Numbered from the stretch's first letter, positions 3,001 through 64,000 are shown. The stretch: DNA of 64,000 nucleotides from Marsupella aquatica (GCA_973895155.1 OZ316898.1:560751-624750), one strand, 5' to 3'. The notes: generated by a model from the sequence alone, not told the origin. Made by a program: numbers and translations.

Positions 3001-3635
3001 CAAATATATTCTGGAGCTAAACGAGGGTCTTGGAAGCCGCTCTGCTTTGTAGACAGATCACATTCGAATGAATTTCTATAGGAATGACTTTTGAGCTGAG
3101 CCAGAGTTGCTTGGAGGATCATTTTGGGACCATCTGCTTGAACACCCCCTAGAGGAGATCAACAGGGAGAAGGAAAGGGCGACCCGGTGTAAGGCTGGGC
3201 TATTAAAGGGGATAGACACCAAAAAGGAAACGGCACCCGGGAGTAAAGCCACACCTCAGAGAGAGGAGACTGTAGAAGGGGTAACCCGAGGAGTAAGAAC
3301 TTTCCAACCCTCTTCATATGGTAGACTAGCCGCGTGTGCGACATACACAGTCGCGCTTTACATCCATAAAATACGAAGCAGCATATGATTCAGGAGAGCC
3401 AGAGCCGGTTATCATCGGATAAGGAAGGTCCACGTCTCGTCATCACTGGTTCTCTCGCGTGACGGTGTCTACGGAGGAAGCAATTTTCAATGCTCTGTTC
3501 TCCAATGCGATATGGCACAGTATCGACCACCTCTTGAACCACCAAACAGAGTGTTCTGCACATGAGTGCTGAAGACTGTACTACTACTAGTGTAGTGCAC
3601 TCGAAAACTCTCGTTGGTGCGCTTCGCAGGCAGTC

Positions 3636-6600
3636 ATGCAAGCCATGGGGTCGCTGATCGTCCCGCGACATTATTATGTGCAATCCTCGGCGGTACGCTG
3701 TGGGTTGGCTGAACCGTCCGGTCGGCCCGCTCCTGTGGGCCAAAAGACTAAGTACAATGATTCGTTCTTTGACAAGGCTTTCATGAGAGTATTCACCACA
3801 AAGATGGAGGAGTTCACAGGTACATGTTCTTTCATTGTGCCGCAAATCGATTAAGCTCGATCTTATTTTCAGGAGACCAGATAGTCGTTCTCAGTGGGCT
3901 CTGAACAGAAATGAGCATCTTAGCAGAAAGCGAAATTAGAAGTGTTCTGACTACCTGTTTAATTGCACTAGATGGCAAATGAATCGAATCTAAGTTTCAA
4001 GCTATACCGAATTGTATAGCTTGGAAGTAGACTTAAGCTACCCTCGTGTAAAATGTTCTACTACCGCACATGAATCGACGATAGGATCTATCCGGACCAG
4101 CAGGGGAGCTTAAATTTACGAGCTCCCTAACTCAGGGGACGTGTTGTGCACTGTTTTCAGTCCAACGTAATCCTAGTCTAAATAGCATTTGTGTCAGTTG
4201 TAAAGTTTATTCGTAGTAAAGGCTGACTAGTTTAACAGAATTGCCCACGCAAAGTGTACGTTGTTCATTAGGGGTATCTCGTGAGTCGCCTACCCCGCTA
4301 TGTTTTGTTCGTGCCTACTCGCAGCCATCCTCAATTTGTGGAAGACAAAGTAGGAAACTAAAGCAGAATTTGGCTGTAATTGAGGATGATTCGGCTTTGC
4401 GATAGTTTTTACCTGGCCAATTACACCAGCGTCGCGACCGCCATGAACAATCAAAGCAGGTTTTCTTTTGAAGCACTCAATTTTTTAGCTGTGCAAACAG
4501 TACTCCGGTTGTTATACCAGGAGGAACCCTTGCGCAGATGCTGCTTCAGCTATTCAATGCAGCTAGACCACTGGAGGAAACATTGAGTACATATGTCGGA
4601 GGAGTATTTCTGAGATGTTGGAGGTCTATCTTGTGAAAAATTGCGTCGGCTCTTACCGTTTTGAAGTTACAAACATCACTTCTCTGCTCTATTATGATTT
4701 AAAAAGTGACAGGGGATGATTGAAATGTACTACACATACCACTCTCTTCTTGTAAGACGGCATTTAAGCTGCAATTTGGAATAAAGCAAGGCCATATGGT
4801 CGAGTTTTCTGGGTTTAGAGATCCCCCTCTTAAGTTTGATCTGTGTCCTAATTATTTTTTCCAAATGATTTCTTGTTGCAGGGACAGCCACCAGCTCCGA
4901 GGGATATGAAGGGCTCGTGGACATTTCGAGAAAAGTAATGCAGGGCAGAAACTCTCAAGAAATACGTGCAGCAGTCCGCCAAGTTTTATTGTCTACTCTA
5001 CCACCTGGGGCACCAGAGCGGGTACTTAATTTTATTGGCCAAACCAGAGCGTCTGACAGAACATGCCATGTCTAGACCAACCGAGAGCCGGAGAATATTT
5101 CGAAACCTTTCTTTCTAACACAATGAGGAGAATCCCCAAAAATGCTGGCCTATCAAATTTGGAATTTTGTATCAGATCGATATGTTTCCCAAGCCATCTG
5201 TTTAAAAAGGACCTATGAGTATGGCTCGTGTTGAACTAAAAAATTGGTATAGTAGATTTTGTATTGTTTTTTTTAAGTTGTCTTGAGACCTTTTGGACAT
5301 TATGGTTTCAATTTCACTTCCATGGTTTCGATTTCACTGCCATGTAGATTAGATATAGTCCTGTTTTCACTTAATCAACAATTTCTTACTTAGCTTTGGA
5401 AGCTAGTTCTTGAGACTGGTGACTTTCGTTTTGCAGTTTCGAAAGTGGTTCCCTCCTACCAAGTGGTCTTGCGAATTTAATGCCTTCATCACTGTCCCTG
5501 TTTTTCAATGGCTCGTGGGTCCATGTGAAGTGAGTACACTCCTCTTCGTCCCCTGCTATCCTGTGGGTTTCTTCAGAGAACTCTGTACTACTCAGACGTG
5601 GGTCCATGGTTTGACTGCTTCCGAGCTAAGGCTTTGGCCAAACCAGTTATTGACCCCTTGTTATCTTGAGTACCGCAGATAGTCGATGTTGAGTTGAATG
5701 GTGTCACGCAGAAGAGCCTTGTAAAGATCACCAAGTGCAGGTAAGCACTACCTCATAGTCGATATTTATAAATGACTTCTTTTGCTTTGCTTGCGTATAC
5801 AACTTTGGAGCTCCAGAAGTAAGAATGCATGCTTATGATCCATGGATTCTCCACAGAACTACAAAAGGACTCTGGACCTATGTCTTCCTGAAGTCTCTGT
5901 AAAATCGGTTGTCCTATGGAAGTCATGTACAGAGAATTCTCCCGTATTGTGGAAAGTAGGGCTTGACAATGAGTCGGCGTTCTAATCGACCTCAAATCAA
6001 AATATGACAGATATCTGGAGAACAGTGGCTGTGTTGGCATGTGTGTAAACATGTGCAAACTTCCCACACAAGATTTTTTCACCAAGGAATTCGGGCTTCC
6101 CCTGACCATGAATCCCAGTAGGTCACTAAACTCTAATGTATCTTCTGTTAGTATCTTTTTGAGACTTGGTTTCAATGTTTTCACCAAGGAATTCGGGCTT
6201 CCCCTGACCATGAATTCCAGTAGCTAAACTTTAGTGTATCTTTTGTTAGTATGTTTTTTGAGACTCGGTTTCAATGTTCTGAATGGACGTTCCTGCTGTG
6301 GCTAACTGAAATATCAAGATTAAGAACGTTCTGGAAGAGTACGTCCGTGACGCTTGTGACAAACAGGGTTTCGTTGAAGAGTACTCGTCGCATTCCTGTC
6401 GAGGAACGGTTAAGCAGGATGCAATATCGTGCACATTGTGTGCAGGATCAAAGTGGCAGATTGGAAGTCTGTGCTGTTAACACAGCGATTATGTATACAG
6501 ATTTTGAAGATATGAGCTGTGAAATGATTTATGGCCAAATGCCACCTCCTCTAGAGGAAGATCCAGCTTTCCAGCAACCTTGTTTCAAAGATATTTGTGA

Positions 6601-6830
6601 GTTCCATAGCATGATTAAAGTTCATAATTATTCTTGTCTATAGGTTAATCATTCCCTTTGTATGTCTGGTTACAACGCTGTGGCGATGGTCTCCAGTTAC
6701 TTTGTCACGTAGTATGCGGTTTGTTTGATACGTAGTTCACTACTTTCTGACTTTCACACATGCTATATCTGTGCTTCCAGGTACGATGGCAAATCCAAAC
6801 ACCCCAACATGTCCAAAACTTCAAAGCTGA
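3636..6830 (+). CDS. D27L1: Beta-carotene isomerase D27-like protein (DUF4033; D27-LIKE1 type), 7 coding exons: 3636-3819, 4882-5021, 5437-5529, 5679-5740, 6011-6117, 6501-6596, 6781-6830
   Basis: GT-AG spliced translation gives [30 protein letters not shown]...[16 protein letters not shown]...[43 protein letters not shown]...[54 protein letters not shown]...[23 protein letters not shown]. This closely matches plant D27-like proteins, and exon phases are consistent. The start codon is less certain. Confidence 0.93.
6076..6278 (+). repeat. 102-bp tandem duplication spanning the exon 5 / intron 5 boundary of the D27-like gene
   Basis: TTTTCACCAAGGAATTCGGGCTTCCCCTGACCATGAAT...GAGACT(T/C)GGTTTCAATGTT occurs at 6076 and again at 6178. 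Confidence 0.95.
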
Positions 6831-7989
6831 GCATGTTAAAGCAATTCGGCACCCATATTAGTAAGATGGTTCCTCTCACTGAGCTATTCTGAATTATATT
6901 ATTGCTCTTGTCAGTGTCACCAATGATCTACCATCATCTTCCTTCGTGCTGATGTCCTTAGCAGGCGCCAAGCATAGAGATTGTATACACTTCGATCAGT
7001 TGCAGAGTACAATTTTGTATATTAAAAACTCTGAAAATTATGATAAAATTCTTCTAATTTTATACCTGTAACATCAGGAACACTCTCAAAAGTGACCTGG
7101 CTCTCATCACATCGAGTTTCTGGACCCGTCATGGTTTACAAGTTGTCAGAATAATTCACTCATGCACAGCACTGTTTGCAACTACCTACCCCTTTTGCAC
7201 AGACCCTGACAAACTTCTTGCACTCTAACAAACCTCAAAGTGAGGTGCAGGACAGGTAGAATCCGGAATCTTTGATAGACACGCGGGCGGTCACAAATTC
7301 AATTTCCTGGCTGTATGGTGAATTTGAAGAAATTGCCGATTTTCCACATCTCCAAGAAATATGACATGTCACTTAGGCACACAGCCAGTCTAAGTGTACG
7401 ACATATGGTGAACACATTCCTTTAGGAGGATTGCTACACCAAGTACTGGTAATCTGTAACGGAAATGTACTGCGAAAGAACCTCTGATGGTCCAAAAAAC
7501 GCACTGTTCTGGTCACGAAGGACAGTCGAGTCCAGCGCTTTCAATGGCAACACAATCCAAAGTACACATTAAGCGCTCCAGTTTGTGGTCAGTTGAGTTT
7601 GCCGTTTCAGTGCTAAGCTTGGGATCACCTGTTATTTGCATACACAAATATAGCAAGTATCTTCGACATTTGGAAATGCTCAAGCCGAGGCTCGATCTGC
7701 ATCGAAACAGTAAAACATAAACAAGTGAGATGGCCCTCCCTCAAAAACACGCAAGCTTCTCTACTGAGCATCTCAACTTCCGTCATAAAACAAGAATCCC
7801 AATACTTCTCACCTGGAACTTTCATCCTTCAGTAAAATGACAACAAAACTCACATATGATTCGTAGATTACAGTATACTCAATTAGTATCTACCCAAGGT
7901 GAAATATAGGAGCCATTTCTGCGCTATGAATGAGACTGAATAAACAAAATAAAATCAGTGAAGTATTTTTGTAGCCTAGTCAGCACATC

Positions 7990-9421
7990 TTATAACTTGC
8001 CTTCCCCTTCCTCCTCTGCGTTGTCGCCTTCCTCATCCTCGGCGTCAGGCTCGTACTCCTCTTGATCATTCTCAGGGGTTGTCTTGCCAATGGGAATCAG
8101 ATTGGAGTTGGCTGTCCGGATTTCATTTAGCTGCACAGCAGAATTTTGCTCCACCTTAGCCTCAACGGTCAGAGTAGAGAAACACCGAGGAAAAAGAAAG
8201 AAGCCAGGGTAAGGACCGAGGTCAAACAGACACACAAAGCTACAGATATTTTGCTACAACTTCGTAAGCATAGAGGAACACTGCCCTATATTCTTGCTAC
8301 GAAATCCAATTCTCCAGGTTGAAAGGAACTTCTACTAGGCCATTCCTCTTCTAACTTTTCTTACTCGGCCATTCAACCGCGGAGAGTAGGCAGAATATCT
8401 TTTACAACATGAGTGGAATACTGAGCGTAAGTAGCGTTCAATAGCATGTAGCCCATAAAGCAAGCCCTACTGATAGTGTCGACTCAGTGACGTGGGGGTT
8501 GGTGGGTCCTTTCAGCTGAGGGATCCGGGAAAGGTGTGGTCGGAAGTGGGAGGGTCTCTTAGATTAGAATTAGTGTTGTCCTGATACAAGCACCATGGCA
8601 CAGTTCAAAAACTAAGAGCGTGGGGACAAGAAAGGCGGAGAAAACATGTAGTTTGGTTTTACAGTACAAGTTTCTGAGGTAATTCTCCCTTGGGTGAAAA
8701 AGGGTCTAGTTTCCATCTTTCTCCAACGCTCCCATGCCTGGGAAGGAAGGGCGAGAGAGAACTGTAAATCTAGCTTTAGAATCTAGTTTGAGGCCAGAGG
8801 AATCAAGAATGTTCAACCAAAATAAAAATTCCACTTCTGCAACAGCGGTCCCAATTTGGCACCCTGTTTTCAGCATGGCTTACCGACTGGGCTCTAGGTA
8901 TATACAGCTTTTAAGAAATCTTTACTCGTCGCAAGAAAAAACGAGCATCGTCATTTGGTGCAATTAACCTCGGCAGACATGAAGAAATACGTGATCGAAA
9001 TCCTCTCGACATATACTCAACTGCAAGTTCTGAACAATTTGAGACCTCCACAATCAAGAATGCGCATAAGCGCACTGATCCTTCTAGGCAAGGCTATTAG
9101 TTGTAGCCAAGTTCTGCTGAGTGTTAATGTGCTTTCACTCACTCAAAAAAAGAAAATAAGCGTGATCGGAGTGTTAAATTGTTAAATTTTCAGCCCAAAA
9201 TAAATGAATATATTCATCGCTAACAGTGATTTACGATGTAGCTAATTTCCGGCAAGCAAATGTAGCCAAAAAATCGCGGCAGCCCGCTCAGAGCACAAAT
9301 ATACCTTTTCTTCGTAGTCAGCCTCCTCCTGGGCAAGCACCGCTTCCTCATTGTAATGGCTGTGCAAGTCGGAATAGAAAACATCGAAAGAGGGAACAAC
9401 CAGAGACGGAAAATCAATCAT
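7990..9421 (-). CDS. APC15: Anaphase-promoting complex subunit 15; coding exons 9421-9305 and 8130-7990 (C-terminus may be spliced further at a GC donor)
   Basis: Spliced translation MIDFPSLVVPSFDVFYSDLHSHYNEEAVLAQEEADYEEK|LNEIRTANSNLIPIGKTTPENDQEEYEPDAEDEEGDNAEEEGEGKL. The FPSL start, helix, NLIPIGK motif and acidic tail are APC15 hallmarks. Donor AAG|GTATAT at 9304, acceptor TGCAG|CTA at 8131. Confidence 0.85.
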
Positions 9422-12400
9422 TGTTCTCTCCTCTGAATCGTTCGATATGGTCCAAGGTTTCTCAAAAAATCAGCAGCGTGCCACCTGCTTCGACCTCGTA
9501 TACGCGTCCCAACGGGTATCAATCAGTCGGTCGTTTTCAAAACTTCTATACAACCTCCCCAGTGAGATTCAAACGAAACAGCAATCTCAAGCCGCAGATT
9601 AAATACATACAGACACACAAATGTTGTGAAATATCTCTACACCGAAACGCAGGCATTGCGTACTTCTCTATCATTTTCTGTTTAGACGGACTTTGAGCCC
9701 AACAAACTAGAAACACAGACAAAAGGTGCAGCTTCATAAGCAGATCTCCACAGTTAGAACCCACCTCTATCTCTGCGAAAACTATGATACCTCTCCGTAT
9801 GTCTCTGAAATAAACAAAACAGATATTTAGAGGATCGTTAGGGAGCTGACGCATTACCTTGGATGAGAGACAACATCCTTCTATGCTAATAAGTAGACCA
9901 CAACAGCCTCATGCATGAAATATAACGCGTAGATAGATGTTTGCACAATTTTTCTAAGAAGTTCGAATCAAAAGACACTTCTCTACATACAGTGCTGTCC
10001 CTTTGTGCTGTCCAATAAAGAGTCGACCTTGCTCAATGCTACGTAAGGTAAACTATGAGCTCAAGAAGATGAGCCTTGCTCAATGTCATGCAAGGTTGTT
10101 CCACTTCCGGCCCAGGGACTTGCACTTTGAGGTTCACAGAGAAATTTTCAACCTGTGTGAATCTCAAAATCAAGTCCAAAGGCCAAACAAATGTACTACA
10201 AGCTAAGATTGAACCTGAGACCAAACCTCGCACAAGCAGCGTTGGCAAGATTTTCTCTAACGTCCACGTCCGTCTCTCGGGGATCATTCACCAATCTATC
10301 TGTCTCACATGGACCAAATGGCGTCCCCAACTGATTCTACACCATCACATCCAGCTAGTTTATTTACAGAAGAAAAATTGTGCCAGCCGGTAGACCTGAT
10401 TGCTCACCACGAATCCAGAAGTTGCTTTGGACTCCGATTACGATCCATCCTCTCCAAGCACCACTATCTTTGCACTCTAGGCTTACAATCGAATCCCTAG
10501 CTTGCAGGTTGAAGGTCGAGTAAGAAAGGTCCAACGATTATGGAGACAAAAGTCTCAATCTCACCACTTGCCCTCTTGCCTTTGGCGTCCGTGTCCACCT
10601 GATTGTAGAATGATTTCATGTTCATATAAAAGCTTGATTGCCATGATCCTTCTCAGTTAAACTCATAGGTGTAGTTGGACTTATGGGATCGGCACTGAAT
10701 TTTGTAAAGCCTTGATTGAATGTCCACCGATAGCCCAAGGACGAAATTAATACACTGACATCTCTTCTGAATACAAGAATCCATGCTAATTGTATTTTCT
10801 AAAGTGGTAGCCTCAATGAAATCTCTATATAATCACGTAACTGTGCTCGCTTCAATGTGGTCCACCGCCTCGACTTTCGAACCAACCACAAAGCAAGACT
10901 CGCATTCGAAGATGCCAAGGCGACCACGACTCACATTGATAGAGCAAAGCATTAAGAGCTGAATCATGAGAAAGAAAGTACTCGAAACATTTCTCGAATG
11001 CCCAACAGCCTCAACGACGTTAGCCAAGAATAAAAGGAACAAAATCTTAAGAGTAGCTGACCCAATGTCTCACCCTTCTCAGAGCTTAAGGCAAAAACTA
11101 TCAGACGTCGACAACATGGTCCCCAGAAAACTGCAAAGCAAAAGCGAATACAGCTTGGTCGAGTCGATTGCGTTGCAAGTCGCTATCACGAACTTGCAAT
11201 TCAAGATCCAAAGGTATAGAGAAACTGCGCAATTGAACAACCACGCCATGAGAAACGCACCTTCTTCAATGCGCCAAAACCGATAAATCACATTTACACG
11301 AGCATCCAGTCGAGAAAGCGGCTCCGGAGTTGGATTCAACGCTCCACAGGCTACAGTCCATTGGGATGCAATTCACAGCTGGAGGCGGCATAATTTCGCT
11401 CGATCTCTACTGGTTGCATTTCAATGTGCATTCAACGAAGGGGCTGGTCGTCCTACTTCCCAGCTTCCAATTGACACACCCCACAAATCAATGCAGAGGA
11501 GAGCCTCACCAATAGTCTCCTCGCAGTAAACAGATAAACCGGACCGTGAAAATCCACAGATCTCCCACGCTCTCTCACTCCATCGATCCAGAACACTCTT
11601 GGAGGCACCTGAATGAACTCTTGTCCCTCTTGGATGGAGCTCGCTCCCTGCCTCGTCCAGAATGCCCTCCGTGTTGCTCTCCCCTATACTCACGGACCGC
11701 ACCTTCGCTGCTGCATCATTCTCCTCTGCCTCCGATCCTTTCGAGCTTACAATCAGAGTCGATCAACCTCCCTGCCTCCGATCAAGCCACACCGGAAAGT
11801 CTCTGAGGAGAAGAATCAGAGGCCCTCCTTATCTTTAGGTCTGCTCTGCTACAAAATCTGAGCTCCACCGGGAGTCTTGGGTTTTATGGTTTAGAGCATT
11901 TATTTTCCTGGAAAACCATACAGCTTTGACGAGTGAATTATGCAATGACTCATTAGCTTACCTATCTACCTATCTAATCTTAATAAAACAAATCACACGC
12001 TACAGTAGGGAAAGGCTTATGGCCTAGACCGAAACCTCTACTGTGACTATGTGGCACATGTAGCGAAGCCTCTAGCCGGTGACTATAGGGCATGTAGAAT
12101 TGGGGGGAACTGAAAATGGGCAGACATTTATGAGCAAAAGCTTTGGCATTCAGGCTAGGTAACTTAATTATGCTCTGACCCATCAATGCATGTGTAACTC
12201 AAAGTAAAAAAGTTTACCTATAAAACATAAAGCAAACTCCCCCAACACACAATTTTGCCACCATATTTTTTTTTGGTTCTAAAGTAGAGCCAACTTCTTC
12301 TTCACACTTTATACATAGTTTTGCACTTTAATTTCAGGGATTTTTCATTGTTGGTTTCTTTTAAAACTCATCAAGGTTTTTCCTTAGTTAAATTTCTGGT

Positions 12401-15400
12401 TAATGGAATTGTGGGCCACAATGTCCCCTCAAACTTGGGCTTGAGCTCTTGTTTGTTGGGTGTTGTATCTTGCAATGTACTCTAACCAGGACTACCCATT
12501 TCAATTTTTTCTTTGCAATTCTTGGTGCTTTATGGAAACTAATGCACACTCCAGATTTGACTGCAGGCGTTATGTAACTTCTGGTCTAGTCTTACTGAAT
12601 ATAGTAAAAATAAAATCTCTTAGGCCTTCATGTGTATGAATGCCCTTTTATGAGGGCAAGATGGGCATAGAAGCCCCTCTAACTTGAGCTACGCCCTTTT
12701 GGGGGGCTGTTATGGCCCGCAATGTCCTGCTATACACACAGAATCCCTGCAAGATTTTTCTATTTGTGTATTTGTGTGCTTTATGAAAGAGAATCTCTGC
12801 TGGCAGCGCATGGACATTTTGAGATTTTCTGTACTTGTATCTTGTTGAAGAAAATAAAATCTAAACTTGCATAGAATTTGGGTTTGTCTTCAAGTGTGAA
12901 GGAAGGAGGAGCATAAAAAAATTTTAATAGCCAGGAAAAATCTTTCATGCATTAGAGTGTAATTCCTTGTTACCAGGGCTTAGGGAGAGAGATGTGCTGT
13001 TTACAGAGCAACTTGTGCTGTGATGCAACAACTTTAGATGAAGTTCTGGGGGCTATTATTGCCCATAATACAGTACAGTAGTACACTTAAAGGCCTAGTA
13101 GATTTTGTATATTGACTATTGTTAGTAAAAATAGACAAGGAATTTTATAGTGAGGCTATCCAAACCTTGACCGCACATTCTTCTCCAAGAATGCACCAAA
13201 AATTAAAATGAGTAAAAAACCATGAAACACAGCAAGGGCAATAACCTCAAAACTCAAGTTAAAGCACTTGTTTGTTCTGTGTCTTATGGATTGTTGGCAG
13301 GGTGCTATTTTGTGTACATAACAACCTACAAATATCCTTCCATAGGTAGTGTAGATATGGCAAGGTGTGGTTGCTTCCTCTCCAAAAGGTATGAAAGGTA
13401 GAACAACCCCAAAAGTATTTAGTAATGCCCAGTTGCATTGTGGGCTACAATGTCCCCCAAAAGGGCTTTGAACCCAAGTTTTTGAGAGGCTGTTGTAGTT
13501 CTCAATGTTTTGGTAACAAGGATCTTATGCACTTTCATTCCTACTATCTTAGGTTTTTTTCTTCTTTTATCACACATGAAGGCAAACTTGAATTGAGATT
13601 TTTACTTCTTCGATAAACAAACAAGTAGAGGACAAATCTCAGAATGCCCCTTGCATAGCCTCGGGTGGGCATACTATTTCATGAAGTACAAAAAAATACA
13701 AATATACAAACTTTGAAGGATTTCAGATTACACAAGACACTGGCCCCTTGCTCCCTTACGCCATAGTCAGGGCCTGAGATGGGCATCTTTCATAAACTAA
13801 AGCAAAATGCATAGAGAAAAATCTTGAAGAGATATAAGTGCTACACAACACGCTCGGCCCCGGCTTCATCACGCGCCCTCCTACAACGAACACCTTTGCG
13901 ATTACTAGTGTGGATAAGCTAGGGACCACTGAGTACAACAGCACGTGAGGAGTGGATAGGACTCCACAACAAAGATTTAGGAGCACTTTATAAGAAGAAA
14001 CGGTAGTTGTGCTACCATTTTCTCTTACCACTGGCCGCCCACGCCAAAACATCACAAGGAAATCAATGGTCAAGGATGGACTAAAATCAATGTCACAAGA
14101 TCAACAATCATCATTGTGTCAGCTAAACACTTGGAAGTGCTCTGGGTCTTTTTTGACCAGAGGACATAGTACATAAGCAGACAAATATCCTGGGGAGGCT
14201 GGGACCCACTTTGGTCCACCTTTGGATGGTACTGTCAGTGGTGTCCTCTTAGTTTGTACAGTGAACTTTAGCCAAAGAGCTAAATCTACTGTGGGGATTG
14301 AGAGGTGTGAGGAAAAAATGCAAACTGCTCCCTCCACTCGTTTTGTAAAGTGCCCCTTAATCACATCACCTAACGATTTCTGGTCAAGACCCACCTAGAA
14401 CAGTGAAAAAGACACCAAAATTAGACCTATATGCAAAGGTCATGACTGTTTTTGCAAAAAAGTCTAAAGAAACTTATCTGCAAACTTGCAAACCATGCAT
14501 GACGGGTGGCTCTTTTTGACAAAAAGTGGTATGGAATGAGGAGATGAAATAAACGGTTTGAGTGGGAAAAAATTTGGCAGCCAAAAAGATGTAAGAATAT
14601 TTCTTACAAACAAGCACCAACAAACCAAAAGCGATCCGTTTATAGATAGGTCTAAAGTATCAATTGTTTCATGTGGGAAACAACCAGGCCAAGAGCAAGG
14701 AACTTGAAGCCCCCATGGACCACAAGGTTAGTCTTTGAAGCTCCCATGGACCACATTTCACAAAATTGAGTTTAACTGTAATACATAATATTTATAAATT
14801 GAAACTTTTAGTAGGTTTGGGGACATGCTAGAGTTGTAGGTAATTACATGTCCATCAAACTGACACTAACTTTTTGGGCCATTTTGGTTGAGTTTTTCAT
14901 CATGGAATGTGGAGGGGAGAATTTCATTACATCCATTTTCATTTTGAGAATATGAAATATAATCTTAGGGTTTGCTTTTCAAGTATCCTCCTTCTCTAAT
15001 TGTCTTGCAAGTACAAAACTAAGAATGATTTTTTGGGCTCATAGTCATTAAGGTATGGGCCCCAAATTACTCATGGACCACCAAAATGTGGTCCACGAGA
15101 GCACTCTGCCCAACATGGTGGTCTATCGTGGCTTCAGTTTTCAAGAGCAAGTCTTCCTTTACTCGACGTACAAGTTTCTTAAAAACTAAAATCGAAGCCG
15201 AGGAACGCGGCAGTATGTTCCTCACGGCTAGAAAGGTAGATTGGCAGCTAACAAGTAGACAGCAAAGGTACCTCAAAAGCTACGAGTCAGTAGGCCCAAA
15301 CACGCTGTCTTGTCTGGGGTAATTGCCACAGCCTCATTATTGTCCGGTCAATACCTGGCAGTTGTACTTGACCTGGAACCCGAAAACCATCATTATCCTC

Positions 15401-17839
15401 ATTATGTTCAATTCCTCTTTACGAATTTCTTTCTTTTGTCTTCATTGTTATGACAAAATCACTAATAACATTAGAACTTCCCCAAAAATCAACAAAAGGC
15501 ACTTATTAGTACCTCTATGCTTTATCGACCCAGTACAGGTACCTGGGTGGCAGGACGGTTGGTATCCTCGTACTGCCTGTTGGTTCCTACAAGGAGTCCT
15601 ACTGCAGTCTGCAGTCTCCATACCATTTAGAGCAATTCACCCCAACAGGTTCCTGCCTTCAGGATAAGCTAATTTGGGGGACCAAATCTATCGGCGACAA
15701 AACATCCCAACGATGCTGATAGACCACGTTTGTCATTTTTCCTCTCATTTTGAGTCCACCTCATCGTTTTGGACTCACTTGGGAATTCTATAGTTGAACC
15801 CCCTATTCTATGTGGCGCAACCTTCCTGACCTGCTGCTCTGGAATTAATTTTCAGAGTTAATTATTTAGCTTTTAATTTTCTAAGGTGAGTATGTTCTTT
15901 GATTTTAGTGCCTTTTTATTATAGATAGAAACCCTTAAAAAAAATTATACTTCTGTTTTGTAGTATCCTTAAGTACTCATGAATAAACCTCACGTCAGAG
16001 TCCCAATCCCCAGGCACTGGCTGTTTGTAAAAATTTTATATATACTATGAGCCGGACTATGAATTTGGAACCCTGGGCCTTCCACCCCAATCACGCCCTT
16101 TATTTCCAATCCTTCAACCATTGTACTAAGCACTTCAGCTCACACTCAAAACTCACTAAGAGTATTTTATTATTAAATTGCAAACAAAGTTAGAGCTGAG
16201 GTCTAGGATTCTAGACTGAAACCTCTAGACCATCACCCCTAAGGCCCCACCAAAATTATGTCTCTGAAAAAAATGATAATATGTTATGTATGTCAAAATG
16301 ACTAGCATGTATGATGATTTCTGCCATCATTTTTAACCATATTCAAAAAATAGGCATTCCCGTTACTTTTACATTTCCAGCTTCTTGAAGCCATGCCTAT
16401 TCTGGTCAGCTCAAAACAAAATGAATTGTAGTAGAACGGGCCAGCTATGCTCATAATCCTGCCCACCAATCAATTCGTCTCCCTCTTTTCTGTTGGAATG
16501 GAAGAGGGAAACCCGTCCATCCAGCCTGACCATGCAACTGGCCTGGAAAGTGGGAAAGCCCTCAATGCTCTGACAAAAGAAAGAGTCTTAGGCTTTGTGG
16601 GCAAAACACTCTTGGCACCAAAAAAAGGGCACAGGGTCAGCCAAAACAACCACGGTCAAATTCCCAGAGGCACAGACAAACCATCATAGAACGGAGAATA
16701 TAAGTGAAGAGTAACTGGAGTCAACAAATTCAGTGATAATCAAGAGAATCACCGTTAATGTGGTCTTATCTTAAACATAACAAAGTAATTGACACGGAGA
16801 ACAAAAAATGGGCATGGGATCCAGCAGAATCTGCTTGCTTGGATACAGATCAAACTAACTAAGCTTTGCTTGATGTTCAAAACACCAGAGACACGGTGAG
16901 AAAGCTTGAACAAATTGCGTCATTTTATGCCCATTGTTAGTCTACGGTTCTGAGAGTCAATTCCTTTAAGCCACATAATTGGCATCCTGAAGGGCAGCAT
17001 CATTATCTTCTTCCTACAATTACCTTAGAACATCTACACTATGGTTGCCTGAAAGCTCAAATTTCAGATTAAACAGAAAAAATGATATGGAAGATTAAAA
17101 TTCAGGGAAACAAGGAAAGACCAAGGGGGGGGGATGTGTGAGTTTCATTTCTTCAATTTATTCTAATGTCATCAGTGGCTCCTTGCTTTGCAGTGTAATG
17201 ATTTCCCTATAACTCTATACCGTTTCATACAACTCAATAGTTCCAAACAAGATAGAATGGACCTTGGTTCTGGCTTGGGGTCTAATAAAAATCGATACTT
17301 GTGCCATGGAGATCTCGATGGTAAATTTCACACCTACTTGATGGAAAAAATTAGAGTGAAATAGAAGAGCCGTGCGGGGAGCTGTGACTAGAAGAACCTA
17401 TGATAGTAAAGATTGTCCATGATGCAAATGGACTGATCAGATAGGGATTATTCTAATATACCACTCATTGATAGTAAGGAAATGCTTACTACAAACAATC
17501 TGGCACATTTTGAGATATGTCAAATTTAAGAGCAAGAATTTGCTGCAAAACATTTTGTAATGATAAGTGTACAGCTGTGTAAGGCACATTTTTAAAGTAA
17601 AGTGGTCCTCAACAAACTGCATAGTCTTTGTTTCACTTACAGATAGGTAGCACATCAGAAACCCCAATCAAAAATCAAAACAATAATAAAGCAAAAAAAC
17701 TAATTTGTCTTGTAAGAAAACTTAGGATTTGCTAAATAGGAACTCAACGTTCAGAAATACTGATGGTGGAGATTGAAACGCTGTTCATGATTACACTGTT
17801 TGCAGTGCTCCTGCCGGTGTGCTGAGTTTATGCTACAAG

Positions 17840-57029: not shown

Positions 57030-58105
57030 CTATTCCAATCTATACAAGGATTTTAACAGCTTACACTTCATATGCTCTTTGCCTCTTTGACATACCCTTT
57101 AGGTTGACTCATGAAGATCACCTCTTCCAACAAACCATATAGGAAAGTTGTGACAACATCCATTGTTTCAGGCAGAGATAAAAATAACGACAAGTGCCAT
57201 GCATAAGCGAAGGGTAGCTTGTGTGATCAGAGGAGATAAGACATCACTGTAGTCCACACCTTTGCATTGTGTGAAACCCTTGGCAGCCAACCTTGCCTTG
57301 TAAATCTTCTTCTCGTGATCACTGCCTCCTTATTTCACCTTCTAGGTGCCAAGTTTTGTTGTCATAGAGTGACTTCATTTTCTTATTCATGGCAGCAATC
57401 CATTCTAGCTTCTCAAGGGAAGCTATGGCCTCTAAATAAGTGGATGGTTCTCCATCCTTCTCAATGATCAACATATTCTTAGAATTGTCAGTATCTTCAT
57501 CATCAATATCCATGTGATCAAATGAAAATCAAGTTTCAAACTGTGTAGGCTCCTTGTGAGGTCTTGATGAAGATCTCCTTGACGATTCTGGTACTTCAAC
57601 AGTTGGTTCTGATGCTTCTGGTATTGATGTTGGCAGTGACACTGGTGCATGAGCATATTCATGCTCAATCTCCCCCTCAATCCTATCAACATTTGGAGTT
57701 TTCATCATTTTCTCTCCTTCTTTCAAAGAGAAAACCTCATTGAACGAGACATCAATGTTGACTTCCAACTTTTGCGCCAAAGGGTCCTGTAGGCGATACC
57801 CTTTTATTCCTTTTTGATAACAAAAAAAATGCACTGCACAAACTTTGGATCAAGTTTAGTGCATGGGATATTTGAGGCAAGAGAGCATAATTATGCCTCA
57901 CAACCAATCAGCAAGTCTTTGGTGCCACATCTCAAAAGGAGTCTTACAACCAATGTTGCTAATTGGAGACAAAATTAGCAAATAAGTTGTCATATTAACA
58001 ACTTCAGCCCAGAAGATATGTGAAAGACTTGCTTGACTTAACATACTCCGCAAACGCTCCAACAAGGTTTTGTTGAACCGTTCTGCAACACCACTTTGCT
58101 ATGGA
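57030..58105 (-). mobile_element. Old, truncated Ty1/copia fragment (integrase C-terminus to RT start)
   Basis: Broken frames GVAERFNKTLLER, YQKGIKGYRLQDP, DVSFNE, DRIEGEIEHE, GEPSTYLEA, YKARLAAKGFTQCKGVDYSDV, with many stops and frameshifts. Confidence 0.85.
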
Positions 58106-59130
58106 GTATAATGGTGGATCTTGCCACCCAGCGCCCTCACCAATCCCCAGCGCCCTCACCAATCCCAGCACCCACGCCTAAGTGCCCTTACTGACCAAAC
58201 GCCTCCACAATACTCCTCGAGCAAGCAACTTGGTGCCCTCAACACCACCTACGACCCCTCCCATACAAAGCCGCACTCATTCCCTAGTGTGACCGTCGCT
58301 CAACGGTCATCATTGTCTGCACAAGGAACCAAACACTCCGGTAAGTAACCCATAAGGATCTAGATCTCTCTAAGTCTAGCGTCCTAACTCAAGCTCGACT
58401 GACATCACTTGGTAAGTAGGTCAGTGATAGGTCCTCCCAATGTCATAAGCCACAACCAAAATTGACACCCACTAATTGTCTAGAACAACTCCTTCCTTGG
58501 GTGCAGCCCGGGTTCCCCCTTGTACCAATCCATCACCAATTGACCGCCCTACACCAGGACATGCTCATGGCCCAATTAGCGTAGCTTGTCCTAATGCTTC
58601 GGAACCAAAATGGCCCCGACTCTAGCGACCAACTCCTGGTTCTCGCCCCGATGATGGTCTAGGAGCTAAGAGCCCTTGGAACTCAACCTCCATGCCTACT
58701 TGGCCTTGCCTCCCCAACGCAAGTTCCCTTGATCGGGGGACTGAAAGCGACTTGGCTGTTGCCCTGGGCCCCCTGTGAACGGACCCCCCCTTGGTACCCC
58801 TTGTTATTATTTTTGAATATTAAAAAATTACCTTGTTATTTAGAAAAACACACATTTTCACAATAATTAATATCCTTTGGATAATTATAAAATTTAGATT
58901 TGAATATTTTTTTATAGCCTTCATTAGTTACATTTTCTTTGTTCAAAGATAATGATTCACAAAAATGAGAACCAAGATAGTTAATGCGATGAAGTATGCA
59001 CTTTATTGAGAACACTATTACTAGAAATAGAAATTACTGGTATATGCCTATTTGACAACATGAGAGAAATAATAAAACACTATTTTTCTAGAACTGAGGA
59101 AATGTAAACTTCTCCAGTTCTCCTACTAAT

Positions 59131-62100
59131 CTAATCACTAGGCTTTTCCTCACTAGACTTCTCCATTTCAGCTACATGCTCACCAGCATGCTCACTTAAG
59201 TAGGTCAATTGTAACGGCCACTCTGCACGCCAAAATATGTGCTTGTAAAAATGAGTCGGCACAGCTGCACGGACTTCTGCAAATTCCGTGACAGGAATAA
59301 CTTCCAATATTCCCTTCACACCCACCTTGGCAGGAAAAATAAAATCGGAAGTCTCTTCACATGAATTACATAGGTCATTATCAACACCACAAACATAACT
59401 TTGGATAACATCATCCCTCATCCTTTTTGACTTTCTGCTCCGCTCTAAATTATTATTGACATTTTGCACACGAAGATCAACCCCAATCTTGGCAGCTTGT
59501 CTCTGTTTTGAAATAGCTCTGCTCTTGTGACCCTTCATCATGCCACTTTTGAGCATATATCTATTCAGTCCTGAATTGACCTGATTCAACACAGCTCAAA
59601 AGGGAGTATCATCAATAGCGATTGTTGTTCTCTAATTACAAGTTGCATTATATATAAATTTTGAGTATATATGAATGAAATGAATGAAACAAGAGAAGTA
59701 GTCGGGGAAGTAGTAGGTTCAAGATGTACCTTCTCTACACAACCTGATTACACAATGTTGTTCCTGACAAAATTGTCCAGAGTAATCACATCATCTGGAT
59801 TTAACAGGAACACAGAAGGATACAGAGAGTCAATTGTAAAATTGACAGTTGATATCACGCAGTCTAAGTCAATGATTTGAGGATCACACACGTTGTAGTA
59901 GAATTTGTGCCTACCAACCCCAATAGGAGTGAACCAATTGAAAACAACTTGACACGCTGCTTCAGAACCAGGCCTATGAAGTAAATCCAAGGCTTCTCTA
60001 GATCTGGCAACACTATTTCCATACTTCCGATGGATGCTTTGCACTCTGCCAATCCACCAAACATATTTTGGCCCAGAAATAGAACATGCTTTAACTGGTT
60101 GACCTCTTGGCCTCTTTGGATTGCTGATAGGATCTTTTGATTTCCCTGCTCGCTTTTTCCCCTTTGCTGTTGTTTGCACAACACTTGTGCTGCGGGTAGT
60201 CCTAACCTGTAGTGTTTCATCAAGAAAAAACACACCACAGTCACTACCAACTGTCATGAACATAGTTGGAACACCTTCCTGATGGTTGGGTTTATCAACT
60301 AAATTGTTGAAGTATATACTCTGCTTCACCCGAGTCAAACGGTCCTTACTCAGATGTGGGTTCCCAGTCAATTGGCTAACTAAAGTACTCTTGTAGATCT
60401 GTCGGTCCTTAAAAGTAACAGTTGGTTTGACATCTACTATTGGCGCACCATACAACAAGTCTGAGTGCATTATGTTCAGTGTGGCCTCAAGTTCAGAGGC
60501 AGCTACCTCTATATCAGGGTCTACCATTCTCTCTATGGAAACTTCAGCTTTAGCAGATGAGGTAGGTGCCTCTCTATCTAGGTTTTGCAAAACTGGTCCA
60601 TCTAATATGGAGACTTCCTCGGACTATGAGATTGGAGCAGATGCAGCTGCTGCAGATTGACCTACAGTAGGACGGGGCCCTACTTCGCCATCCAAAGTAT
60701 CCTGGACATCTACTAGTGAATCCAAATTGATATCACACCAACCACCATACTTCACCCCTTTGGCCTCCACCTTCCAAGGAGATTTCCACCAGGTGATGTC
60801 CCTACAAGAGGTTGAAGGATTCATTTGCAACTCAGTTGCTGTAGTTTGTGCCAACTTTAACCCTTCTTGCAGAACAGTGACAACCTGTGCATCATTCTCA
60901 ATCCTTGTATAGTCTGTTTGGTCTGCCTCACGTTCAGCACCATCCCCCATAGGGTGAAGTTTCATCCAAATGTTACAATGCTTCTTATGGCTCTTCCCCG
61001 CACCCATCATTCCCTCAGCCACATCCATTACAGCCAATCTGTTAAGATTAGTAGCACACTCCACTAATTCTGCCACATCATAGCTCCGCTCATTACCACG
61101 CATACCCCCTACTTTTGAAAAGAATTGCTCACAAGCATCGGATCCCGTTAAAAACAAAGGCACTGGCAAATGCCTAAAATTGTCCCTAAACTGAATTATG
61201 AGAAGGACTACAAAGTGAACAGACATTTGAATGTCTAGAAATGTTTGCATGGGAATGCAATTTCGAGTAAAACTAATAGGCTGTGTGTTGCCCCCCATTG
61301 CATGGTTACCATGAAAGCACCACAGGCACCACAGCCTGAAGAAAAAACCCACTTTTGCACAGAGTAAAATCCTCTCTCGCAATGTGAATTTGGTGTTCAT
61401 GAATATGTCTAAATAATCTGCACATATTCAAAAATACACCTCAGTTCCATGTGAGAGCTCCACCCTTACATCATGCCACAAACGCAACTCTCTTAAGGTG
61501 TCAATGACCTTGCGGTTACAGAATCTCTGTGCACTAGTCCAGTTTTGCCTATCATTCCGGCTTACATCCTCACAGTTCAAGCCATGATCTTCGGGATCAT
61601 ACAAGTCAGACAGATGTTTGATGTGACTATAGTTAGCCACGGCTGCCCCTAATTTCAAAATCCGTGCAGTAGAATCAAGGGGATTCACAAGCTTCTTGCC
61701 GTTGTGAATATAATCTTGATCATGTAGCCCATAGGCATGGATCAATACACCATTGCTGGTCATTGAGTGGGTCAGTTTCCAACCTTCCCATCTCAGGCCA
61801 GCCCGTGGCCCTGCCTCCCCTCTGCCTGTGTAATCTTCCAACATAAGCTTTCTCCTTCGTGCATCCCCATCACTTGCATGGCCTAATATAGGCCCCACAC
61901 TTGCCAGGCAATGAGTAGTCCATAGTGAATTAAGGAAATTCCACTGACTCCTAACCCAAGGAGATTTAAACTTATTACAAGTGGGAATTGCCATTGCACA
62001 TAATCGAGGAAACCCTTCACAAAGAGGGTTCACCACTACACACCTTGCTTGGTGCCCTACCACGGAATTATCAAAAGCATCAATAATATTGTTGAACCCA

Positions 62101-64000
62101 ACTTCTCCTTCACCCACAAAAATCTCCCCACCAACTTCACAGATATGGTCGTTTTTCCGTCCACAAAACCCAAGGAGGGTATCATGTTTGCAAGCCATCT
62201 GCAAACACATGGCAGATGAGCCAAGTGTAAGGCCATGATGTCTATGTAACTCTTTAGCATAGACATGAAAGTGAGTACAAGATGCAGTTTTACAAGTCAT
62301 GGCACTAGTAGTACCTGACTGTTCGCTTGACACAAGTCTCATCCTCTGCTAAATAGCACGGAATAGGCCCTGATATGTTAAGACGAGTTTTGATTTGCGA
62401 GTAAACCTCTGCAATAAACACAAATTGCTCTGCATGGATCCCTGCTCTGAACACTTGCATTCCTCTCCTGTCTCGTTGAAGGGTGTTTAAACTCGGCCCA
62501 ATTATGTTGCTTGCCAAACAATCAACAACTCGCCTGCCCCCATGTAGGAACAATGTTTGACAAAGAAGCTTTGTTCCTGCCTTATACCTGTATCCCTCTT
62601 TTGTAGTATTGAGGTTTGAAGCTATATCCGACAGCATATCCCAAAGAGCACCTCTCCCACCAAACGCTCTTGTTCTGTGAGCCAAAACTATGGATTGGCA
62701 TAGCTTAACCACCGACACCTTGTTTGGTCCGGGCTCATAGTCCAAGCAAACCTCTTTGATGCTTGGGACTCGGGACTTCAACATTAGGAGTTTATGACTT
62801 AAATATCTGGTCAGCCGACGCTCTCTGATAATGGAATTTCTGTAAATTTTGGCCTGCCTCTGAATCTCTGGACAAGTCAGGTAATCTAAGCGCCTACCAT
62901 TGCCAGTGGTCCTTTCCCCTCTTTTCTCAAGGGCCCTATCTTCTCTGAGTACCCTCAACCGAAAGTCATCTAGTGTTTTTATGGAAAAACACTTGGAACA
63001 TGTCAAGTCTTCAAACCCTCCCCCTAGTTCGGACACTCTCCTACATTCCCTATGTCTAAATAGACCAGCGATGTAATAGGTTTGTTCACAAGTTAAAGAC
63101 CAAACCTCTTCCCTGACCAGGGGCTCTGCATACCAGACACCACCCATTTTAAGCTGGTCGCTTAAGACTCCCTTGATAGGCCTGGATTCTGAACCATACT
63201 GTACCTCATCCCGCCAAAGACCCCAACACAACAACGACAAGTTATCAAATGTACCTCTCTCATTATCGGCTGTGGACACCCGAGATGAACTAGTGGAAGC
63301 ACCTCCAGCCGATTTCTTAGTCAAGAACCCTTGGATTGTCCTCTGTTTGACATCCCTCCCATCCACACTACGGGGTCGTCCTGGGCCCCCAGTCCTGACA
63401 GGCTCATTGCGAGCCGGTCTCTGAGATCTGGCCACATAATCAAGGTGGATGAGGCCAGTACAATGGGCTATCAGGTTGGCTTCAAGGTTCCATTGTTTTG
63501 GAATCAATGTTAAGTGGTGCAGACAGAAATTGCAGAAGAGTTTAAGTGTGTGTAGCTCCACTGGCTCCTTATGCACATCACCCTTAACTACAAATGTGGT
63601 ACGACCAACAGTCTGTGATTCGTTGACCTTTTCTACAATCCGCATATGTAGCTCTAGTATGCCTCTATCACTTAGGGTATTAGCTGAAGCCCTCCTCGCA
63701 ATCTCTTGGGCCTCAACTCTCTCACCCCTATTTGATGCCACACGACCTGCATGCTTCAGAGAACGCAGGTGCAAGTTTTTGAAATTGGTGAATGTATTAT
63801 TGATAGATGATCGATCCATCAATACACCTTTGGCTACTGCTTCAAAATGCCTATCACACTTGCAACACTCAATATGCCCCCATGGCAAATTATCCTTGTC
63901 CCAGGTCTTCACTCTCCACTTGTGGTCCCCATATTTAAAGTCCTCCATGTGAATCTTCAACTTATCAACAGACTGGGACCACACTCTCTTTAGATCATTG
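59131..64000 (-). pseudogene. P-element/THAP9-like DDE transposase gene, intron-containing and decayed; 5' end beyond the window
   Basis: Motifs in order: GPSLNTLQR; LAEDET (D1, about 62340); HASDGD (D2, about 61870); DQDYIHNGKKLVNPL; DRQNWTSAQRF; GSDACEQFFSKVGG (E, about 61130). Predicted introns 62314-62199 and 59729-59632; one frameshift near 62188; in-frame stops at 61428, 60624, 59748, 59596. Confidence 0.7.

Follow-up and report, generated by a model that had tools for sequence, protein, structure and literature searches.

P-type transposases are known mainly from animals, with a few representatives in protists and fungi, and no other transposases are known to require GTP. In P transposase and THAP9 an N-terminal zinc domain is followed by a dimerising helix; a coiled coil, an HTH (helix-turn-helix) domain, an RNase H domain split by an alpha-helical insertion between beta5 and alpha4, and a C-terminal region make up the protein, with recurrent motifs at the first catalytic Asp (DE(T/M)), at the start of the insertion (D-x2-H-x2-K-x3-N) and at the catalytic Glu (D-x2-E-x-FF). 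The catalytic triad of P is formed by D230, D303 and E531 (PMC7776569). In plants, a 2025 survey of 1007 genomes covering 17 superfamilies of elements with terminal inverted repeats (TIRs), P among them, recovered active elements of seven only, P not being one of these (PMC12973397). Here we describe a locus in a 64,000-nt stretch of the land plant Marsupella aquatica (GCA_973895155.1 OZ316898.1:560751-624750; hereafter the window), where positions 58762-64000 hold, on the minus strand, the 3' 5.2 kb of a TIR DNA transposon of a 9-13 kb class. This segment is probably a decayed copy of an autonomous cut-and-paste DNA transposon with its 5' part cut off by the window edge, and we are similarly confident that the transposase is a P-like, THAP-less relative of the P element transposase. 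This family appears to follow P and THAP9 in the order of domains and motifs given above, and it shares with them short TIRs, a 3'-terminal G on the transferred strand and target site duplications (TSDs) of 8 bp. Coordinates are those of the window and features lie on its minus strand unless otherwise indicated.

The fold of a relative supports the P-like identity. This 1061-aa protein, P0017, matches exon 2 of the window gene with an E of 1e-72 (36% identity over 463 columns) and is 46% identical in a phmmer search with a 304-aa piece of the window protein. Its AlphaFold2 model, built from a 39-sequence alignment, reached a mean predicted local distance difference test score (pLDDT) of 81, with values above 90 in the core. 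When this model was searched with Foldseek against the PDB, the P transposase structures 6P5A/6PE2 came at the top (E 1.5e-11, target TM 0.67), followed by RAG1 (1.9e-4) and Transib (8.5e-4), with Hermes absent from the matches listed. Re-ranking with VIA-align gave 6p5a_A a Z of 25.7 (root-mean-square deviation 4.8, 409/442 aligned, model residues 166-664 on chain residues 135-566) versus 12.1 for Transib, 10.8 for RAG1 and 8.3 for Hermes, and among all 48,161 PDB cluster representatives P again scored 25.7, the next structure 10.0 and Hermes 7.6. HTH, split RNase H and insertion domains are all covered by the match, whose first aligned chain residue, 135, lies upstream of the RNase H domain. 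A preliminary description of this stretch had proposed a P-like transposase, and structure upholds it on this relative: the best match is P transposase, and not hAT, MULE, Kolobok or CMC.

The motifs which that description quoted, the N-terminal CCKC, CNFC, PGRPR and CWGL clusters included, are all present and in the order given, and the correspondences that it drew with P and THAP9 are consistent with the fold and Pfam results. Within the core, an HTH region at about 62383..62748 (limits approximate, by offset from the P0017 model) includes the sequence GPSLNTLQR (62473-62499). The presumed first catalytic Asp sits in AEDET, its codon at 62341..62343, and the residues D268/E269/T270 are kept in at least 90% of the sequences of the family alignment A1 and invariant in the subclade alignment A3. 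The second lies in ASDGD (61863..61877), with invariant S387 and G389, and with D388 and D390 kept in at least 90% of A1. The presumed catalytic Glu belongs to SDACEQFF (61119..61142), within a conserved GSDxCE..FS context in which E614 is invariant in A3. These three acidic motifs are near-invariant in the family and all intact in the window, and their spacing is conserved: ~120 aa separate DE[TS] from SDGD and, in 20 or more long members, ~240 aa separate SDGD from CExxF. Compared at the level of aligned ranges, the same span of model and chain given above is compatible with the D-D-E triad of P.

Between the second Asp and the Glu, an alpha-helical insertion domain occupies approximately 61143..61721. 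It begins with DQDYIHNGKKLVN (61683-61721), which carries the D-x2-H-x2-K-x3-N signature and in which D441, H444, K447 and K448 are nearly invariant in A1, and further on it contains DRQNWTSAQRF (61521-61553) in the expected order. The P0017 model is helical over residues 442-620, inside the span superposed on 6p5a; the GTP-binding-type insertion announced in the preliminary description appears here as an alpha-helical domain lying over the GTP-binding domain (GBD) of P. We consider this insertion domain presumably homologous to its P counterpart. A motif alignment indicates that two positions contacting GTP in P seem to be kept, namely the Lys of D-x2-H-x2-K, which may correspond to K385 of P, and the Asp that lies three positions ahead of the catalytic Glu (D528 in P). 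The other residues of P in contact with GTP are K400, V401, S409, F443, D444 and N447. Because the D-x2-H-x2-K motif and this Asp are conserved, the insertion domain may bind GTP as it does in P, a prediction made from sequence.

Profile searches point in the same direction, with signals that are weak but specific to P-element models. Besides the structures 6P5A/6PE2, P and THAP9 have the Pfam families PF12017, PF21787, PF21788 and PF21789. When 39 members were scanned one by one at E<=1, the only recurrent families were PF12017, in three members, and PF21787, in two. In P0155, PF12017 (P-element HTH) reached 23.7 bits against a gathering threshold of 23 over residues 135-188, ~45-100 aa before the first Asp, and weak PF21787 matches covered the strand of the first Asp in P0004 and P0018. 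The sole Pfam match of P0208 at E<=1 was a weak one to PF21788 (TNP-like GBD; E 0.13), which fell, as expected, over the DQDYIHNGKKL region. Moreover, the ESM Atlas neighbours of a window piece bear PF21787 and PF21788, and with the subclade profile A3 against PDB sequences 6p5a_A was the first match other than acidic low-complexity ones (E 0.45).

Several points weigh against this reading. None of the five window pieces matched a P model of Pfam at E<=1, and most long relatives gave no P-element match either; in fact, similarity falls under the Pfam thresholds for nearly all members. Neither phmmer with the 304-aa piece nor the family profile A1 retrieved P from the PDB sequences. The fold evidence comes from P0017, 36-46% identical in the core, and not from the window protein. 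The TSD length derives from two copies of a single species, Calypogeia fissa. In addition, the first and second Asp are separated by ~120 aa here and by 73 in P, the ~50 additional residues containing an extra Cys/His motif. Finally, the Kolobok, MuDR, Dada and Novosib transposases have no solved structure, and the closest solved structure is not necessarily the closest of all. Other differences from P concern the architecture of protein and element: the THAP domain of P and THAP9 is replaced here by a ubiquitin-like domain, a pair of C2H2-like modules, an AT-hook and a Cys/His cluster specific to the family; the protein, with ~1550 aa versus 751, is about twice as long; its C-terminus is a putative BAH/Tudor-like beta-barrel where P has a small alpha-helical domain; and the elements reach 9-13 kb, with TIRs of 15 nt starting with CCCTGGG instead of 31 nt starting with CATGATG. 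With all this in view, strict membership of the P superfamily is roughly an even call.

The element as a whole is best seen in its complete relatives, which are 9-13 kb long and have 15-nt TIRs of sequence CCCTGGGCCCTCACT and 8-bp TSDs. A Logan contig of 9332 bp, L001, is 69% identical in DNA to window positions 64000-59749 (4.3 kb). Its transposase frames are uninterrupted (744 aa plus 842 aa), and the 15-mer is found in inverted orientation at its start (position 35) and where the contig ends (9332). In the C. fissa assembly GCA_965154635.1 two complete elements, L002 and L003, are bounded by this 15-mer as well. L002 runs from 3136 to 15995 (~12.9 kb) between two copies of the TSD TCCTCAAT. 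Its right junction is also tandemly duplicated (L002:15950-16082), with a 66-bp unit in which the element's last ~36 nt are combined with the 8-bp TSD and 22 nt of flanking DNA. L003 extends from 5750 to 15856 (~10.1 kb), its right TIR agreeing at 13/15 positions, with the TSD TGTACAAG on both sides and an intact, intronless ORF (open reading frame) of 1529 aa inside. To judge from this uninterrupted ORF, the recognisable TIRs and the intact TSD, L003 may be a currently active element. TSDs of 7-8 bp had been anticipated for the window element, and 8 bp is the length in 2/2 complete copies examined. A tblastx comparison of L001, L002 and L003 revealed no conserved cargo gene between 5' TIR and transposase, the transposase alone being common to them. 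Single public runs yielded ~100-150 contig pieces at >=90% identity to the window element, which makes the family multicopy in at least two organisms.

In the window itself, the preliminary description had joined five minus-strand ORFs into a reading frame of more than 1400 aa, at the cost of two introns, a 1-bp frameshift and four stops. All five ORFs are indeed there, and the frameshift stands; one intron suffices in place of two, only two of the stops are internal, and the fifth ORF lies outside the transposase. The frame stays open to the window edge, so that ~1375 aa of a full length of ~1530-1560 aa are contained in the window and, judged by relatives with complete N-termini, the first ~150 aa lie beyond it. 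Exon 1 (62315..64000), truncated at its 5' side by the window edge, encodes the zinc modules, the AT-hook, the Cys cluster, the coiled coil, the HTH and the first catalytic Asp, and is 70% identical to residues 153-715 of P0001. An intron of 116 nt follows (62199..62314, GT..AG), with its donor AG/GTACTA after KRTV and its acceptor TTTGCAG/A. An intron sits at the same position in L001, and the splice is confirmed by the intronless C. fissa protein P0208 (1529 aa), which reads straight through the junction as AEDETYVKKTVRWLPKYDTLLGFCG. No RNA support for the intron was obtained, as none of the listed runs is recorded as RNA and no contig skips it. Exon 2 (59751..62198, 2.4 kb) covers the rest of the N-terminal part of the RNase H domain with the second Asp, the insertion domain, the C-terminal part with the Glu, an acidic linker and the C-terminal beta-barrel; it is 64.7% identical to P0011 over 476 aa and shares 69% nucleotide identity with L001.

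Three lesions interrupt this frame. Just past the intron acceptor, at 62187..62189, one A has been lost from an A-run and the frame shifts (L001 reads tgg ttg cct aaa cat and the window tgg ctt gc- aaa cat), while other copies, in runs X1, X3 and X5, have one extra base behind 62186. Two in-frame stops follow, VYF*ICADY at 61428..61430, a sense codon in L001 and P0208, and APIS*SEEV at 60624..60626, where contigs of runs X1 and X3 have a G at 60626 and hence a sense codon. The natural stop of the transposase is at 59748..59750: L001 (NFVKTNHV*) stops at the same position and P0208 ends there too. An ORF of 153 aa further downstream (59131..59592), considered as a third exon, was rejected because this stop before it is conserved, which places the ORF outside the transposase, where it may be either a second, small gene or a 3' region under conservation. 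It shows 28% identity over 88 aa to an ORF at 8375-9001 of L001 (pairwise E 3e-12). The two ORFs contain Cys residues and share a well-conserved C-terminal motif, A(V/L)P(T/S)HFY..(I/M)FW..WP. No counterpart was found by tblastx in L002 or L003, nor a significant Pfam match, and the element may have here a second gene that is specific to its lineage.

The 3' end of the element is marked by a TIR remnant at 58762..58770, which reads CCCTGGGCC on the plus strand and comprises the first 9 nt of the 15-nt repeat. Immediately next to it comes the subterminal sequence CCCTGTGAACGG, which L001, L002 and L003 also have, conserved, at their 3' ends; compared with these three, the window lacks ~26 nt of the 3' TIR and its neighbourhood. 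Contigs of other copies (run X1) depart from the window just before 58769 and have TIR-like sequence there. The remaining 3' subterminal region (58771..59130) is non-coding and aligns with the 3' ends of the same three relatives. Altogether, with its 1-bp deletion, two nonsense codons and a ~26-nt deletion within the 3' TIR, the window copy is dead: the frameshift, the stops and the damaged TIR mean that it cannot function. Tandem TIR-like matches at 58127-58159, with two mismatches, were rejected as the end of the element, since the subterminal sequence aligns at 58762. On the plus strand, 58127-58164 consists of a tandemly duplicated 19-nt unit, CCCAGCGCCCTCACCAATC, whose likeness to the TIR (12/14 positions) is probably coincidental. 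About 600 bp beyond the 3' end, short minus-strand ORFs (57898-58171) resemble a copia-type integrase (CKTPFEMWHQR), so that a remnant of another transposable element (TE) adjoins the insertion site.

Outside the catalytic core the family departs from P at both protein ends. The first 510 aa of the L001 protein were modelled with an overall pLDDT of 62, with values of 70-90 at residues 1-78 and 143-345 and below 55 in the Cys cluster. Residues 1-82 (L001:3573-3820; P0001 aa 1-82) adopt a ubiquitin-like beta-grasp fold, with Z up to 8.5 against the USP7 UBL, the Rad23 UBL and ubiquitin; such a ubiquitin-like start, shared by this clade's enzymes, is not usual among transposases. Residues 142-240 form an alpha/beta zinc-containing module whose matches (Z ~7.5) are non-diagnostic. 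In the window, zinc module 1 (CCKC..HLRSLKH, 63751..63867) belongs to a region with pLDDT of 80-90 in the L001 model and keeps the pattern C-x(1-2)-C..H-x4-H in most N-terminal homologues. Zinc module 2 (CNFC..HCTGLIH, 63445..63534) has a conserved C-x2-C..NLExNL..H-x5-H, and the AT-hook-like PGRPR (63370..63384) lies within an SG..GRP motif conserved across homologues. The Cys/His cluster that comes next (LLCWGLW..FRHREC..LTCSKC..DFRLRV, 62989..63234) shows nearly invariant C/W/G columns in alignment A2 and precedes the coiled coil, the place that the THAP domain takes in P transposase. A similar C..C..C..FR..R pattern followed by a long helix is found at the N-terminus of members of the animal clade (A1 and A3 consensus; P0017 model), in the position of THAP plus the leucine zipper of P. 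Across the clade of the window element the Cys/His cluster is conserved together with both C2H2-like modules and the GRP AT-hook.

The preliminary description had seen no THAP domain within the window, and the same is seen in relatives: PF05485 was not detected in the complete N-termini of P0001, P0002, P0004, P0005 and P0208 (E<=0.1-1), and no THAP fold appeared in the fold-search lists of the 510-aa model, in which the Cys cluster is of low confidence and could hide a divergent zinc fold. At the other end, the beta-barrel (59766..60068) corresponds to P0017 906-1012 in an hhalign comparison of A5, the alignment of the window clade's C-terminus, with A1 (probability 96%, E 4.9e-9). P0017 889-991 matched BAH domains with Z of 8.1-7.1 (AIPP3 8.1, Rsc2 8.0, then EBS, ZMET2 and ORC1) and Tudor domains with Z of ~6.5, middling values which suggest, at the level of the modelled fold, a BAH/Tudor-like beta-barrel. 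The last 160 aa of the C-terminus found no usable neighbour in the ESM Atlas. In other members, a PTM/DIR17 Tudor, SAP or C1 domain sits at the C-terminus. The extra domains of P0030, P0057, P0154, P0264 and P0272 differ among themselves, with PTM/DIR17 Tudor, SAP, C1_2 and, in the precomputed Pfam column, an Ulp1-type peptidase C48, which suggests repeated capture of chromatin- or SUMO-related modules within the family.

The family proved to be large. Phmmer with the 304-aa piece against 1.84 billion cluster representatives retrieved 705 at E<=1e-3 and 50 at E<=1e-30. Named liverwort homologues come from C. fissa, Riccia fluitans (several loci) and Riccia sorocarpa, and named marine invertebrate ones from Amphiura, Mytilus, Clytia and Desmophyllum, that is, cnidarians, a mollusc and an echinoderm. 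Among the named matches there was no moss or vascular plant, most matches carrying no name. Two EukProt entries of unconfirmed host also match, and a 375-aa homologue (P0100), on a 1.1-kb contig labelled as a metagenome-assembled genome (MAG) of Planctomycetota, is most likely a mis-binned eukaryotic contig. A maximum-likelihood tree of 102 core sequences, arbitrarily rooted and with the window represented by the tail of exon 1, an X and exon 2 (X at the stops), groups the window with C. fissa at 100% support within a clade of 14 rows characterised by the long N-terminal arm, and the animal sequences that carry names fall into the second major clade. These data are compatible with vertical retention as well as with horizontal acquisition.

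The explanation that competes most directly with a P-like transposase is that the family belongs to, or coincides with, another superfamily of DDE (Asp-Asp-Glu) transposases, be it Kolobok, hAT, MuDR/MULE, Dada, Zisupton/KDZ or the poorly described Novosib, which we regard as unlikely. TSDs of 8 bp are also made by hAT and by Novosib, the latter occurring in cnidarians, echinoderms and green algae, whereas Kolobok duplicates TTAA, in contrast with the 8-bp TCCTCAAT and TGTACAAG of the complete copies. An RNase H-like DDE core with an alpha-helical insertion is likewise common to RAG1/Transib and to hAT, but their fold matches stay at Z 8-12 (7.6-8.3 for Hermes versus 25.7 for P), and the family shows neither the hAT dimerisation domain nor a sequence signal of RAG1/Transib. 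Among the Pfam matches listed for the 39 members there was no hAT (PF05699 included), MULE or KDZ family, and hAT and KDZ were also missing from the individual scans. The D-x2-H signature characterises the hAT/P/MuDR/Kolobok/Dada group (PMC9587614) and places the family there. Within this group the resemblance to Kolobok deserves attention: the available parts of the same work and its supplement give SDGD at the second Asp and D-x2-H-x2-K as common features, and the extra Cys/His motif after the first Asp recalls the CCHC finger of some Kolobok lineages (PMC9587614). On the other hand, in those same parts Kolobok has its own Glu motif, (S/T)xxNE..N, and contexts of the first Asp and of the Glu (DCAW; NFNEAxN) unlike the P-like DET and DxCExFF found here, and a zinc finger between C/DxxH and E, near-universal in Kolobok (PMC9587614), is absent from the family consensus. 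As for Novosib, it does not figure among the C/DxxH superfamilies listed in the available parts of PMC9587614, and its RNase H domain is itself uncertain (PMC5751038). Literature on Novosib, Zisupton and one liverwort genome contained no description of this family.

Two other explanations concern the nature of the locus. A long conserved ORF with ubiquitin-like and chromatin-reader-like domains, often companions of domesticated transposases, would fit a transposase-derived host gene in the manner of THAP9, or its pseudogene, that no longer moves; we hold this to be very improbable in view of the conserved TIRs and 8-bp TSDs around two complete copies, the window element ending at the same terminal sequence, the many diverged copies per genome, the several gene models of the family on different large contigs of R. 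fluitans, and the absence from other copies of the lesions that inactivate the window copy. Even more remote, in our judgement, is a chance or artefactual chain of ORFs, or contamination by animal DNA. The named relatives outside plants are marine invertebrates and one match bears the Planctomycetota label, as contamination would have it, but the window groups with C. fissa at 100% and apart from the named animal sequences, homologues lie on liverwort contigs of 3-57 Mb, and a copia-type integrase remnant stands beside the element in the window. Moreover, 705 cluster representatives and 69% DNA identity over 4.3 kb to an intact relative are far beyond chance.

Returning to the P-like transposase, its domains appear to follow the order ubiquitin-like domain (beyond the window), two zinc modules with the AT-hook, Cys/His cluster, coiled coil, HTH, split RNase H-like DDE domain with its insertion, acidic linker and BAH/Tudor-like barrel. 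In the mechanism that we propose, the N-terminal modules and the HTH would tether a dimer to the transposon ends, where the triad formed by the Asp of AEDET, the Asp of ASDGD and the Glu of SDACEQFF would cut and rejoin DNA with an 8-bp stagger at the target, and the C-terminal barrel may read chromatin. The sequence anatomy, the conservation throughout the family, the TIRs and TSDs of relatives, the multicopy state and the fold match of one relative are observations; catalysis, GTP use, the assignment of modules to DNA and chromatin targeting we infer. At a broader scale, to which we give somewhat less than even weight, the family would represent either a branch of the P-type transposases that is deep and lacks THAP or a superfamily sister to them, an alternative we keep in the wording because structures of Kolobok, MuDR, Dada and Novosib do not exist. 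This lineage, which counts at least 705 clusters at 50% identity and occurs in both liverworts and marine invertebrates, would have kept the unique insertion domain of P, and possibly its GTP dependence, while the DNA-tethering head was replaced and tails of the chromatin-reader type were gained.

The family has no Pfam annotation and stands outside the standard classes of plant transposons. The screen of 1007 plant genomes relied on Pfam (PMC12973397), which does not detect this family. The family also stands for a group of large elements that go unclassified in the standard annotation of plant TEs. If the broader reading is true, this would be the first P-type cut-and-paste family with intact and possibly active copies in land plants, as exemplified by L003. 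Such a THAP-less system in plants would offer a comparison point for the recognition of transposon ends, for the ancestry of the GTP-binding insertion and for the gain of chromatin-reading modules by transposases, and the intact-looking copy of C. fissa would be a candidate for a plant-derived transposon tool.

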